The notes under the pieces are model-generated. The model did not search any database. It was given only the letters and a program-made list of their open reading frames with translations, and had not been told where the DNA came from. Positions 2,090 through 10,809 of a stretch of DNA of 64,000 nt are shown here, in pieces. Source of the DNA: Guillardia theta CCMP2712 (lineage: Eukaryota; Protista; Cryptophyta). Position 1 is the stretch's first letter. The number at the start of each line of letters is the position of its first letter. Both the position numbers and the translations under genes were made by a program. The stretch lies in NCBI RefSeq assembly GCF_000315625.1, contig NW_005434592.1:177225-241224 (forward strand). Direction: 5' to 3'.

Positions 2090-2480
2090 CTTTACTCAAA
2101 GACAGTTAAGCTAAAAATTAGTACGAGGACAATCAGGAGACCCTGACACTCTGTCGCACAGGCCATACGACTCCGGCCGGGCCGGGGCCACGCGCCGCGC
2201 GCCGCCCGGCCGGTCTGAGAGTCACCGCCGGTCCGGGAGCCCGGCGGGGTGCCCCCCCCGGCCCGCTCGCCGGGGGGCCCGGCCGGGCCCCGGCGCTACT
2301 AGGCTACTGGGCCGCCATACTACTGAGCCCGGCGTTCACGGTTCGAATTGCACCAGTGAGCCGTTCGACTCGAGTCCGAGTCAGCCCGCCGGCCCGGCAG
2401 CAGGCCCCCCGGGCCGCCTGGTCCGAGTCGCCGCGGCCGCCGCAGCAGTGGCCGCAGCCAGGTTGGTAGGAGCCTGATCC
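2090..2480. repeat. GC-rich micro-palindrome island in a divergent intergenic region
   Basis: Dense CCGG/GGCC/GAGTC/GACTC words. It opens with CTTTACTCAA...AGTACGAGGACAA-TCAGGAGAC, also present at 54877-54945. Confidence 0.65.
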
Positions 2481-2582
2481 GATCCAAACCACCCCATATC
2501 TAAGAGGGGTACTCATCTATGCCTAGGAGGGGTACTGTCACCTGCCACCTATGGTAAGCAAGCCCGCTTCAGCGCCGCAGGC

Positions 2583-5500
2583 ATGCCGCGTCGTAACGCT
2601 GTTCCGGTGAGTAGAAGGCGGGAAGATGGGGCGGGGAGGAGGAGGTATGCTGTGACAATGAGAGGAAAGTAGAACAGCATGCTTGTTCTCACTCCATCCC
2701 TCCACGGAAACCTGCGAGATCAGGGCGAGAGACCGGCTCCCTGACCCGACCATGATCCCGACGAGGAGGGAATGGCTTCGTCCCCTCAGGACGCAAGTCT
2801 CGCTCCCGTGTCTTGTCCTCCTGCACCCTCTCCCTGTCTCAGCTCCCCATCCTTTGGGATCGACAACCAACCCCTCCGCCTGCTCTTGTTCCATGCCGTG
2901 ACCAGCCCTCGACTGACTCGCTGCTACAGGAGAGAGTTTCAGGGGAACAGCAGCACACGGAGGTAGTGACGGTGAAGCTCCCGCACCAATGGATGCCCAA
3001 AGCCCGTATGAAGGCGGTCAGCCCCCTCGGCATTCCCTTCGAGTTCGTCCCTCACCCCGAGTCCCGGCCATGCGGCACGCTGGAAATCCGCGTCTACTCA
3101 ATGAAGGGACCTCCTGGGGAGACCTCTACGAACGCCGACAAACCCGTGCCATGCCGCGTCGTCGGCAAGGAAGTGAGTGCGTCAGAAACGACGGAGGAGA
3201 CGGAGGAGACGGAGGATGTTGGTTCTCTTGCTCATTGTAGGGTGTGCAACGACGGAGGCGACGACGAGAGCATGCTGCTGTGTGACGTTTGCGACAACGG
3301 GTTTCACATCTACTGCCTGAGTCCGCCACTGGCGGCGATACCGGAGGGAGAATGGCATTGCTCGGAGTGCTCGAAGAACATGCCGGATTGGGCGAGATTC
3401 AAAGTCAATGACAGGTAGCTGGACAGGTCAAGTATGCTGGAAAACTTGCAGCCTGACGCTGAACGGCAGATGCGTTGCCTTGTTCGAACAACAATCATGG
3501 CTTGTCAAGATCTTGAAGATAGATGGCCAGGAAGCCTTCGTGCACTTTGATGGGTGGAAGAAGAAAGAGAATATGTGGATCCAGCGCAAGATCCTGAGGC
3601 CCGTTCCCCCCAAGGAGGAGCTCACCAGAGTGTACAAAGGGAAGTTATTGACAGAGGAGGAGGAGCAGCAGTTGAAGTCGAAGAAGTTGAAGAAGAAAAA
3701 GGAAGACAAGAAGACCGCCAAGATGAAAAAGAAACTCAAGGAGATTCAGAAGCTTATCAAGTCGGTCGAGGCAGAGAAGAAAAAAGGGAACGGGGAAACG
3801 TCAGCGAGCAAACTCTCGAGCTCTTTCATCGAAGAGCTCAACAAGGTAGGGAAGGCTTCAGCGAAGCAGGCGTGTGAGAGCTCCAACACAAGTGCTTCCA
3901 CGGTCGATCAGAAGTCCGAACGAGAAGCTATCAACGCGAGATGGATGCTTAAGCTGAAAGGCAGGATCCATCACACCAACTCCCTCCCCAACATCACCAC
4001 CCTGTCAGCTGGATGTGACGACGGATGGAGCGACTGTTGTGTGGAGTGCGGCGAGACAGGAGAGTTGCTCTGCTGCGACACATGCCCGAGGACCTTCTGT
4101 CTCGACTGCACGCGCCTGAACAAGGTGCCCAGAGGAAAGTGGAGCTGCCGCTCTTGCGTCAACTCCCAGCGGATGATCGCGACAGGAGGAGGGATAGGAA
4201 GCGACCAGATCCTCCTGCAGATCCAGAGGTTGTGCGAGACGTTCCCCATGACCCACTTCCTAGGCGCGCTCTCCTTTGACATCGCGCGCGTGCGGGCACT
4301 GGCGCAGGCGTGCAGGAACGAGGGAATATCTCTGAACGGGATGCATGAGGTCTCGACAGCCCGGGAGGCCGTCGACAAGCTCAACGGCCTGCTGGAGAAA
4401 GCGACGGTGGTCAATGGCGGGGAGAAGCCTGGGGATGCGGAGAAGGAAGGAGCCGAAGCAGGGGCGGGGAAGGAGGAAGGAGGAGGAGAGCAGGGGGGCA
4501 GAGGAGGGGCAGGAGAGGGCCAAGGCGACAAATCGACGAGAGTCAGCAAGGTAGTTGCACCGATAGCTCTACCTCCCAAGTACCAGAAGTACGAGGAGGT
4601 CGTCACAAAGTTCTGCCAGGACGGAGTTTGCCGGCCCAACATCGCCCTGACGGCGGAGCAGGTGGAGATGTGCAGGGAGGCTGTGTCGAACTACTACAAC
4701 CGAGTCAAGTACACCATCCAGACGCTGCAGCTCAACGACAAGCTGGAGCAGCAGGGCTTTGCTGAGTTCAAACTGAGGTGCGCCGGTAGGTACGACATGC
4801 AGGTCCCGGAGCTGGAGACCGAGGCCTTCAAGTTCCTGCGGGAGGACGCGCCATGGCTGGAGAGCGTGCACGCGATCTTGGGAGAGGACTGCAAACTGAC
4901 CGTGATCGGCTGCATGCTGTCTCAGCCCGGCTCGCAGACGCAGCAGTGGCACTCGGATGGAGATCACTTGAGCGAGCACGAGCACCTTCCCCCGTACGCC
5001 GTCAACATCTTCGTCCCTCTGGTGGACATGAACTCAGCGCTCGGGCCCACCGAGTTCGTGCCGACGACCCACCTGCTGTTCAACTACGAGCCGATCACTA
5101 GCATCACCCCCATCACCATCTGCACCCCAGCAGGAGAGTGCCTCTTCTTCGACTACAGGATCAAGCACAGAGGCCTCGGCAACCGAGGTCACTACGCGCG
5201 CCCCATGCTCTACATCACCTACGGGACCAAGGCATGGGCGGACAAGGCAAACTTCAGCAAGAAACGCTACGCCAAGCTCCCTCCCCTCCTCAATCAAAGG
5301 CCTCCCCGCAGCCAGCTGCCCGTGGACAGGGAGGACCGCATGAAGTTGCTAGAGGCCACAACAAGCCCGGACAAGAAGGGGGGAAAGAAGCGGACGATGA
5401 AGGCTGACGGGGAGGAGGGAGAGAAACCCCAAGAGGAGTCTAAGGATGGAGACTCTCAGAAGGCAGCTGAGAAACCCCAAGAGGAGGGTAACGAGGGAGA

Positions 5501-5597
5501 CAAGGCAGCTGCTCCCCCCAAGGACAGCCAGAGGTCGGCAAAGCGACAGGCTAAGAGCACAGTGACCAAGATGAAGAGCGAGCCCAACAATGCCTGA
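2583..5597 (+). CDS. PHD finger - chromo-barrel/Tudor-knot - PHD finger - PhyH-like Fe(II)/2-oxoglutarate dioxygenase fusion protein
   Basis: ORFs 2813-3418 and 3408-5597 join across a short intron. PHD1 CRVC..MLLCDVCDNGFHIYCLSPPL..PEGEWHCSEC; chromo-barrel AFVHFDGWKKKENMWI; PHD2 CVECGETGELLCCDTCPRTFCLDC..WSCRSC; dioxygenase QQWHSDG..VNIFVPLVD..GPTEFVPTTH..AGECLFFDYRIKHRGLGN..RPMLY. The start codon is tentative. Confidence 0.85.
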
Positions 5598-5639
5598 GGA
5601 TCGACAATGATGACCTTCGAGTCGCCTCCTCATCAAACA

Positions 5640-6050
5640 GAGTGACAGTGACGTCTGATCACCCGGGCTATCACCGGGTTATTGCAAGACTCTCAGTGTT
5701 CCGAATTCAATTAGTATCATCAGACCAGTAAACAACCATGTACATCACTAAGTCGCTCGACTTGACAAAGGAAGTTGGCAAGCCGCTGAGACTGTCTCAC
5801 TGCCGTCACGCCGATTCACTGCGGTGCCGTACCATGATGGCCCGCTCCGAGTCGGCGATCGGACTCCGGAAGGGCGGCCCGGCCCGTCCCGCCCGGCGGC
5901 CCGGCCCCGGCTTCATCGAGTCATCACTAGCCCGGGCGCTTCAGCTGCAGTCATGCGATTCATCGTAGTCACAGGCTCAGGCCTCCCGGATGCCTGCTGA
6001 CGGTCCCGGGGCCCGCCGGGCCGCGCCGCAGGCTCGCCTCGCCTCAACTC
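5640..6050. repeat. GC-rich micro-palindrome island upstream of the glutaredoxin
   Basis: CCCGGG, GGGCCC, GCCGGC and GAGTC words cluster here; no credible ORF. Confidence 0.5.
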
Positions 6051-6065
6051 ATAAAGGTGACAATC

Positions 6066-7384
<1,319 letters not shown>

Positions 7385-7667: not shown

Positions 7668-10809
<3,142 letters not shown>

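Follow-up and report, generated by a model that had tools for sequence, protein, structure and literature searches.

We have analysed a stretch of 64,000 nucleotides (nt) from the cryptophyte Guillardia theta CCMP2712 (contig NW_005434592.1, positions 177,225 to 241,224 of the forward strand), which we refer to as the window and in whose own numbering all positions are given. At positions 2583-5597 of its + strand lies a gene that joins chromatin-reader modules, namely two PHD fingers and a Royal-family beta-barrel, to a dioxygenase of the PhyH type dependent on Fe(II) and 2-oxoglutarate (2OG). A first-pass annotation, made from the letters of the sequence, had pointed to this combination and had read it as a lineage-specific enzyme recruited to methylated histone H3. 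The motifs quoted there are all present in one set of + strand reading frames, and 2583-5597 corresponds exactly to the ATG and the TGA of the spliced coding sequence (CDS).

Gene structure and transcripts

Two long open reading frames (ORFs) on the + strand, at 2813-3418 and 3408-5597, lie in different frames and are linked by a 55-nt GT..AG intron. The spliced CDS (2583-2606 + 2930-3414 + 3470-5597, + strand) is open throughout and encodes 878 amino acids (aa) in three exons. Public contigs resembling complementary DNA were placed on 2200-6000; they come from runs (X1, X2 and X3) that are only guessed to be RNA. The exons, introns and untranslated region (UTR) are as follows.

2583..2606, + strand: exon 1, the ATG and seven codons (MPRRNAVP), lying at the 5' end of the assembled transcripts or very close to it
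2607..2929, + strand: intron 1, 323 nt, GT..AG, often retained (X1, X2 and X3 contigs)
2930..3414, + strand: exon 2, with an unconserved N-terminal region, PHD finger 1 and the first barrel strand (ORFs, contigs, spliced CDS)
3415..3469, + strand: intron 2, 55 nt, GT..AG, phase 2, inside the barrel (joint in three runs)
3470..5597, + strand: exon 3, ending at the TGA stop 5595-5597 (ORFs, contigs, spliced CDS)
5598..5736, + strand: 3' UTR, minimum extent (X2 record 4 reaches 5736; no coverage past 5755)

The joint that marks removal of the 55-nt intron (3411 to 3467, cut +3) recurs in contigs from three runs, each belonging to a different study. A single contig of 2908 nt (X1 record 1) consists of 2587-3411 joined to 3467-5549, with the 55-nt intron alone removed, and PHD finger 1, the barrel, PHD finger 2 and the dioxygenase therefore reside on one transcript. 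Thus 2583-5597 is a single gene, and the RNA does not split it. No contig covers the sequence upstream of about 2583 (2200-2580, all runs) or beyond about 5755, which is what transcript assemblies should show. From the raw RNA run X17 came a single read at the locus, so that this run is uninformative.

Exon 1 and intron 1 are defined by the loose end of an X2 contig (record 3), which matches 2583-2605 in 22 of 23 letters and is joined to 2929/2930. Intron 1 has been removed from this record; X1 record 1 still contains it, and X2 record 2 and X3 record 5 cover part of it. In transcripts that keep the intron, the first in-frame start available is Met30 (2993-2995), and the domain content of the protein is unchanged. 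We note that a considerable fraction of the transcript contigs keep intron 1, and that the ATG at 2583 then opens an upstream ORF of 29 codons, with the likely start shifting to Met30 (2993). Such retention may reflect a regulated 5' end.

The dioxygenase domain and its accompanying modules

The modules and catalytic residues of the predicted protein, numbered by residue of the gene model, are these.

3233..3373, + strand: PHD finger 1 (PHD1), residues 110-156, canonical C4HC3 (Pfam PF00628)
3398..3602, + strand: Royal-family beta-barrel, residues 165-214, MBT/Tudor/chromo-barrel-like, split by intron 2 (Pfam, family profile)
3675..3788, + strand: Lys-rich tract, residues 239-276, resembling a nuclear localisation signal (NLS) or a coiled coil (sequence)
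4032..4157, + strand: PHD finger 2 (PHD2), residues 358-399, all-Cys variant (C4-C-C3) of AIRE/BHC80/CHD4 type (AlphaFold2 (AF2) model, Foldseek, VIA)
4203..4400, + strand: conserved four-helix module, residues 415-480 (family alignment)
4416..4532, + strand: Gly/Glu-rich linker, residues 486-524 (sequence)
4578..5300, + strand: PhyH-type Fe(II)/2OG dioxygenase domain, residues 540-780 (Pfam, KanJ match, AF2, Foldseek, VIA)
4950..4958, + strand: HxD metal ligands His664 and Asp666 (WHSDGDH, 4947-4967), invariant in 30 of 30 domains and aligned to the H-x-D of KanJ
5166..5168, + strand: distal metal ligand His736 (KHRGLGN, 5163-5183), invariant and aligned to the HRG of KanJ
5199..5201, + strand: Arg747 (RPMLY, 5199-5213), 11 residues past the distal His, predicted binder of the 2OG C5 carboxylate, invariant
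5301..5594, + strand: charged Lys/Glu-rich C-terminal tail, 98 residues that include 22 Lys/Arg and 20 Asp/Glu (sequence)

The catalytic region matches the PhyH family of Pfam (PF05721) at E 9e-13 and 49.4 bits, against a cut-off of 22, over profile positions 1-211 of 213, and the JmjC families of Pfam give no match even at E<=1. Its best relative among solved proteins is KanJ, the kanamycin B dioxygenase of Streptomyces kanamyceticus (Protein Data Bank (PDB) entries 6s0r and 7cl2), at E 6e-12, with the HxD, HRG and RP motifs aligned. The AlphaFold model of the domain, which has a predicted local distance difference test score (pLDDT) of 92.6, leads to the same protein: KanJ ranks first in Foldseek (E 3e-15, template-modelling score 0.69) and heads the VIA-align matches (Z 22.1, 215 residues at 3.3 A), where AsqJ (21.0), AviO1, EvdMO1, TlxI, EasH (19.6), SnoK and AndA follow and where PHYHD1 (Z 17.1), EctD (17.1) and PHYH (16.9) come after these. 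No JmjC chain is among the top 50 matches of Foldseek or of VIA-align. TET/JBP and AlkB have no match in Pfam, and neither fold is among the top 50 structural matches of the two programs, a result that does not strictly exclude an unlisted family. By its sequence and in the predicted structure, then, the oxygenase domain is of the PhyH type and not JmjC, as the first-pass annotation had supposed. A scan of NCBIfam found no family, and a feature search of the ESM Atlas gave weak PhyH-like leads (score 0.76).

The active site is intact. His664, Asp666, His736 and Arg747, which had earlier been picked out as the HxD pair, the distal His and the 2OG-binding Arg, do not vary in 30 aligned domains that are 38-77% identical to that of the window; about 20 further positions are likewise invariant, and we predict that the enzyme is catalytically competent. 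The role of Arg747 as binder of the C5 carboxylate of 2OG is one that we take from what is known of the PhyH family. A halogenase variant was considered and is ruled out, as the Asp of the HxD motif is present and invariant.

The two PHD fingers proposed from the letters are both upheld, on different kinds of evidence. PHD1 is found by Pfam (PF00628, E 4.8e-13, 49.3 bits versus a cut-off of 24), has the C4HC3 pattern, and matches PDB sequences of CHD4, KMT2C/D, Lid/KDM5 PHD1, WSTF, BAZ2A/B, DPF, ATXR5 and UHRF1 at E 1e-20 to 1e-12. PHD2 falls below the Pfam thresholds (PF00628, 13.6 bits versus 24; PF23011, 15.8 bits versus 27) and is recognised by eight Cys in PHD spacing and by superposition of its AF2 model (pLDDT about 80-87), which lies on AIRE PHD1 with 45% identity and a root-mean-square deviation (rmsd) of 1.6 A (Foldseek), on PHF12 with Z 6.9, rmsd 1.1 A and 40% identity (VIA), and also on BHC80, CHD4 PHD2 and TRIM24/33. 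The Cys noticed earlier at the canonical His position of PHD2 is real (RTFCLDC, 4089-4109); it is common only to the two closest relatives (P0001 and P0010), and other homologues have His. Both fingers are nearest to PHD fingers (KDM5/Lid PHD1, BAZ2A/B, ATXR5, AIRE, BHC80 and CHD4) that read the unmodified N-terminus of H3 (H3K4me0), and not to readers of methylated H3. Docking would therefore be likelier on unmodified H3 tails than on methylated H3, and the proposed recruitment to methylated H3 through the PHD fingers is not borne out.

The barrel can be read only when the 55-nt intron is removed, and carries the motifs VHFDGW (3540-3557) and NMWI (3570-3581). Alone, the spliced peptide matches MBT below the Pfam threshold (E 0.0019, 18.8 bits versus a cut-off of 22). 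A profile built from eight barrels of the family finds, in the PDB, the MBT repeats of L3MBTL1 (3.5e-14), the Tudor domain of PHF20L1 (1.6e-7), that of PHF20, and the chromo-barrels of EAF3/MRG15/MOF (1.5e-5 to 2e-3 for EAF3/MRG15). What had been called a chromo-barrel is, on this profile, a Royal-family barrel that is closer in sequence to MBT and Tudor domains than to chromo-barrels, its subclass being left undecided. It is the only module of the protein that is a plausible reader of methyl-lysine.

Directly after PHD2 is a module of 66 residues with the motif L..I..LC..(F/L)P.(S/T)HF, which about 19 of 43 family members carry, P0021 in two copies. It is 79% identical to its counterpart in the metagenomic orthologue, and so as conserved as the catalytic domain. 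Pfam assigns the module to no family, Foldseek and VIA-align give no specific match for its fold, and a database search with it alone returned the three closest relatives and nothing else. The Lys-rich tracts previously described as NLS-like are likewise present, at residues 239-276 and in the C-terminal tail.

Relatives of the gene and its surroundings

Searching a database with the catalytic region yielded 43 relatives. Those that are named come from the haptophytes Diacronema lutheri and Emiliania huxleyi, the pelagophyte Chrysophaeum taylorii and the apusomonad Thecamonas trahens, and the remainder are MMETSP/EukProt transcripts and sequences from marine metagenomes; no animal, fungus or land plant is among the named matches. 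A Pfam scan of the 44 family proteins found PhyH in 42, PHD in 22, Chromo in 7, an HMG box in 7, MSL3 chromo-like in 2 and Tudor-knot in 2, as well as other Tudor types. Domain order varies: in P0002, PhyH leads and the barrel comes at the end. In a maximum-likelihood tree the architectures follow clades, and stand-alone relatives that lack readers occupy a separate long branch (98/99 support); P0041-43 and P0100 are stand-alone paralogues of this kind. The closest relative, on a metagenome contig (76% identity), has all five modules in the same order, and the identities to the orthologue are 50-64% for PHD1, 43% for the barrel, 67% for PHD2, 79% for the helical module and 77% for PhyH. The architecture is thus conserved and recurrent and is not a chance juxtaposition. 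Nor is it lineage-specific, as had been suggested, for members of the family are present among Cryptista-like, haptophyte, pelagophyte and apusomonad sequences, a taxonomic range drawn from the few named matches.

On the marine metagenome contig that carries the orthologue (L001, 5280-7866), PHD1 lies in two pieces in different frames, and the orthologue therefore has an extra intron relative to the gene of the window. A protein search with the PhyH domain only returned mostly short metagenomic fragments, with no named bacterial relative and no characterised protein, and no paralogue was found within the 64,000 nt of the window. The public names of family members are generic ('hypothetical protein', 'PHD-type domain-containing protein', 'ectoine hydroxylase-related dioxygenase'). 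We note that P0084 is a 227-aa piece of the locus (4914-5597) that runs from an internal Met to the stop and resembles a prokaryote-style gene call, and that automatic calls such as this one conceal the fusion of readers and oxygenase.

Microsatellites and purine- or pyrimidine-rich simple repeats, among them (GGA)n, (GAG)n, (TGC)48, (GCAGGA)39 and (CTCTC)16, are dense around the gene, and flank it at the following positions.

117-207, 348-426, 733-811, 1364-1420, 1840-1945, 6682-6815, 7056-7256, 7806-8041: simple repeats

Downstream, an ORF at 6057-6842 on the + strand contains a CPFC motif in a glutaredoxin-like context (...FSFSKCPFCLRSKELL...) followed by a simple repeat. It has no Pfam match (read as 6057-6839), and is probably an intron-cut exon of a glutaredoxin-type gene.

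A possible role in the oxidation of chromatin

To our knowledge, the 2OG oxygenases directed at chromatin form three groups: JmjC, TET/JBP and AlkB. The protein described here shares its design with the JmjC demethylases (KDM5/Lid, KDM4, PHF8/KDM7), in which an Fe/2OG oxygenase and PHD, Tudor or chromo readers occupy one polypeptide, and the PHD fingers to which its PHD1 is closest are those of CHD4, KMT2C/D and Lid/KDM5; the JmjC enzymes differ, however, in the subfamily of their catalytic fold, so that the protein is an analogue of that group and not a member. In its catalytic domain it is nearest, by sequence and by fold, to KanJ, with which it shares the PhyH family and the HxD...H...R arrangement, and which hydroxylates an amine-bearing carbon. 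KanJ, in contrast, is a stand-alone bacterial biosynthetic enzyme that acts on an aminoglycoside, is only about 22% identical, and has neither readers nor the helical module. Human PHYH and PHYHD1 and the ectoine hydroxylase EctD also belong to PF05721 and are structural neighbours (Z 16.9-17.1), but they act on small molecules in the peroxisome or the cytosol, lack chromatin modules and are more distant than KanJ.

We think it probable, on balance, that the protein is a nuclear, PhyH/KanJ-like Fe(II)/2OG oxygenase that is docked on nucleosomes by its three readers and oxidises a chromatin substrate; the nuclear location, the reader specificities, the substrate and the outcome of the reaction are parts of this picture that we infer. 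The repeated fusion of the domain to five kinds of chromatin modules suggests the role on chromatin. The two PHD fingers would grip the unmodified N-terminus of H3, the MBT/Tudor-like barrel may bind a lysine in a low methylation state, and the docked oxygenase would then oxidise a C-H bond of a nearby chromatin substrate, for which the favoured candidate is the side chain of a Lys or Arg in a histone tail. Hydroxylation of a C-H bond alpha to nitrogen, as carried out by KanJ, also underlies N-demethylation. In the proposed enzyme, hydroxylation at such a position could result in demethylation or deamination, and hydroxylation elsewhere in a simple hydroxyl on the side chain. KanJ itself hydroxylates the amine-bearing C2' of kanamycin B, leading to oxidative deamination (PMC13707489). 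It is because this chemistry is an alpha-to-nitrogen hydroxylation that we favour oxidation of histone Lys or Arg side chains.

One form that such an enzyme might take is that of a feed-forward eraser that reads its own product. In the LSD1-BHC80 and KDM5 PHD1 circuits, the fingers bind unmethylated H3K4, which is the product of the linked demethylase. The likeness of PHD1 to KDM5 PHD1 and BAZ2, and of PHD2 to BHC80, AIRE and CHD4, would fit a circuit of this kind by analogy only, and the oxidases differ, being of the flavin or JmjC type in the known circuits and PhyH here.

Several considerations weigh against the role we propose. We know of no member of the PhyH family that acts on protein or nucleic acid, and nearly all the top structural neighbours in Foldseek and VIA-align are small-molecule enzymes. 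As the identity to KanJ is only about 22%, its chemistry cannot be confidently transferred. The reader specificities are guesses from the nearest relatives; the function of the Lys-rich tracts as NLS, and with it the nuclear location, is a prediction; and the N-terminus is uncertain, being either Met1 (2583) or Met30 (2993). Given the single read in X17, expression may also depend on conditions.

The preference of known PhyH enzymes for small compounds also leads to a different reading, in which the oxygenase is merely parked on chromatin and serves to sense O2, 2OG or iron, makes or destroys a metabolite locally, or hydroxylates a non-histone chromatin protein. All the characterised close structural relatives act on small molecules, and the paralogues P0041-43 and P0100 do without readers; yet recurrent, independent fusion to five types of chromatin module, in both orders, is hard to explain unless the substrate is on chromatin, and we consider this reading unlikely. 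We regard as similarly improbable a nucleic-acid base-modifying oxygenase, resembling TET/JBP or AlkB, that would oxidise or demethylate a base of DNA or of chromatin-associated RNA at sites marked by the readers. Seven family members do have HMG boxes, which bind DNA, and the domain has a strong structural match in a PhyH-fold subunit of a trypanosome RNA-editing complex (8fnc chain 14, Z 18.0). HMG boxes are, however, also common in chromatin proteins that act on histones, the protein of the window has no DNA-binding domain, TET/JBP and AlkB are absent from its Pfam matches and its top 50 folds, and no base-acting enzyme of the PhyH family is known to us. We note that the subunit in 8fnc, which belongs to the RESC complex and aligns over 206 residues, sets a precedent by placing a protein of PhyH fold within a ribonucleoprotein complex.

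Large complexes such as that in 8fnc contain PhyH-fold subunits without known chemistry, which would leave room for a pseudo-enzyme acting as a catalytically silent scaffold. The invariance of the metal triad, the 2OG-binding Arg and some 20 surrounding positions across 30 diverged members makes this very improbable. That a reader gene and a dioxygenase gene have been read as one can be considered effectively refuted. Prokaryote-style callers do give fragments only (the 227-aa P0084 at the locus and the 647-aa P0001 for the orthologue), but one transcript contig runs in an open frame all the way from PHD1 to PhyH, relatives derived from transcriptomes (MMETSP, and EukProt ORFs marked complete) carry both PHD and PhyH, and the modules are collinear in the orthologue.

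Lastly, a PhyH dioxygenase fused to chromatin readers was not found described in the full-text literature, a search that did not cover subscription-only papers and leaves a prior mention possible; nor is one described in a survey of Jmjd6 and the double-stranded beta-helix (DSBH) fold, in a survey of eukaryotic chromatin evolution or in a broad survey of peptide-modifying dioxygenases. The family is apparently undescribed, and combines in a new way a known enzyme family and the known design of readers joined to an oxygenase. We see in it a promising candidate for a new class of enzymes that modify chromatin. Only tentatively do we raise the further possibility, which we hold to be rather doubtful, that it constitutes a fourth class of chromatin-modifying 2OG oxygenases, PhyH/KanJ-like, old and widespread in protists, that oxidise histone Lys or Arg on nucleosomes selected by H3-tail readers; the absence of animal, fungal and land plant members among the named matches would explain why such a class has stayed unnoticed. 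The family points to chromatin or epigenetic chemistry that is missing from models built on animals, fungi and plants, and could add a new modification of histones (or of bases), or a new eraser. If the role we propose is correct, it would link chromatin to the supply of oxygen, iron and 2OG in ecologically dominant marine algae.

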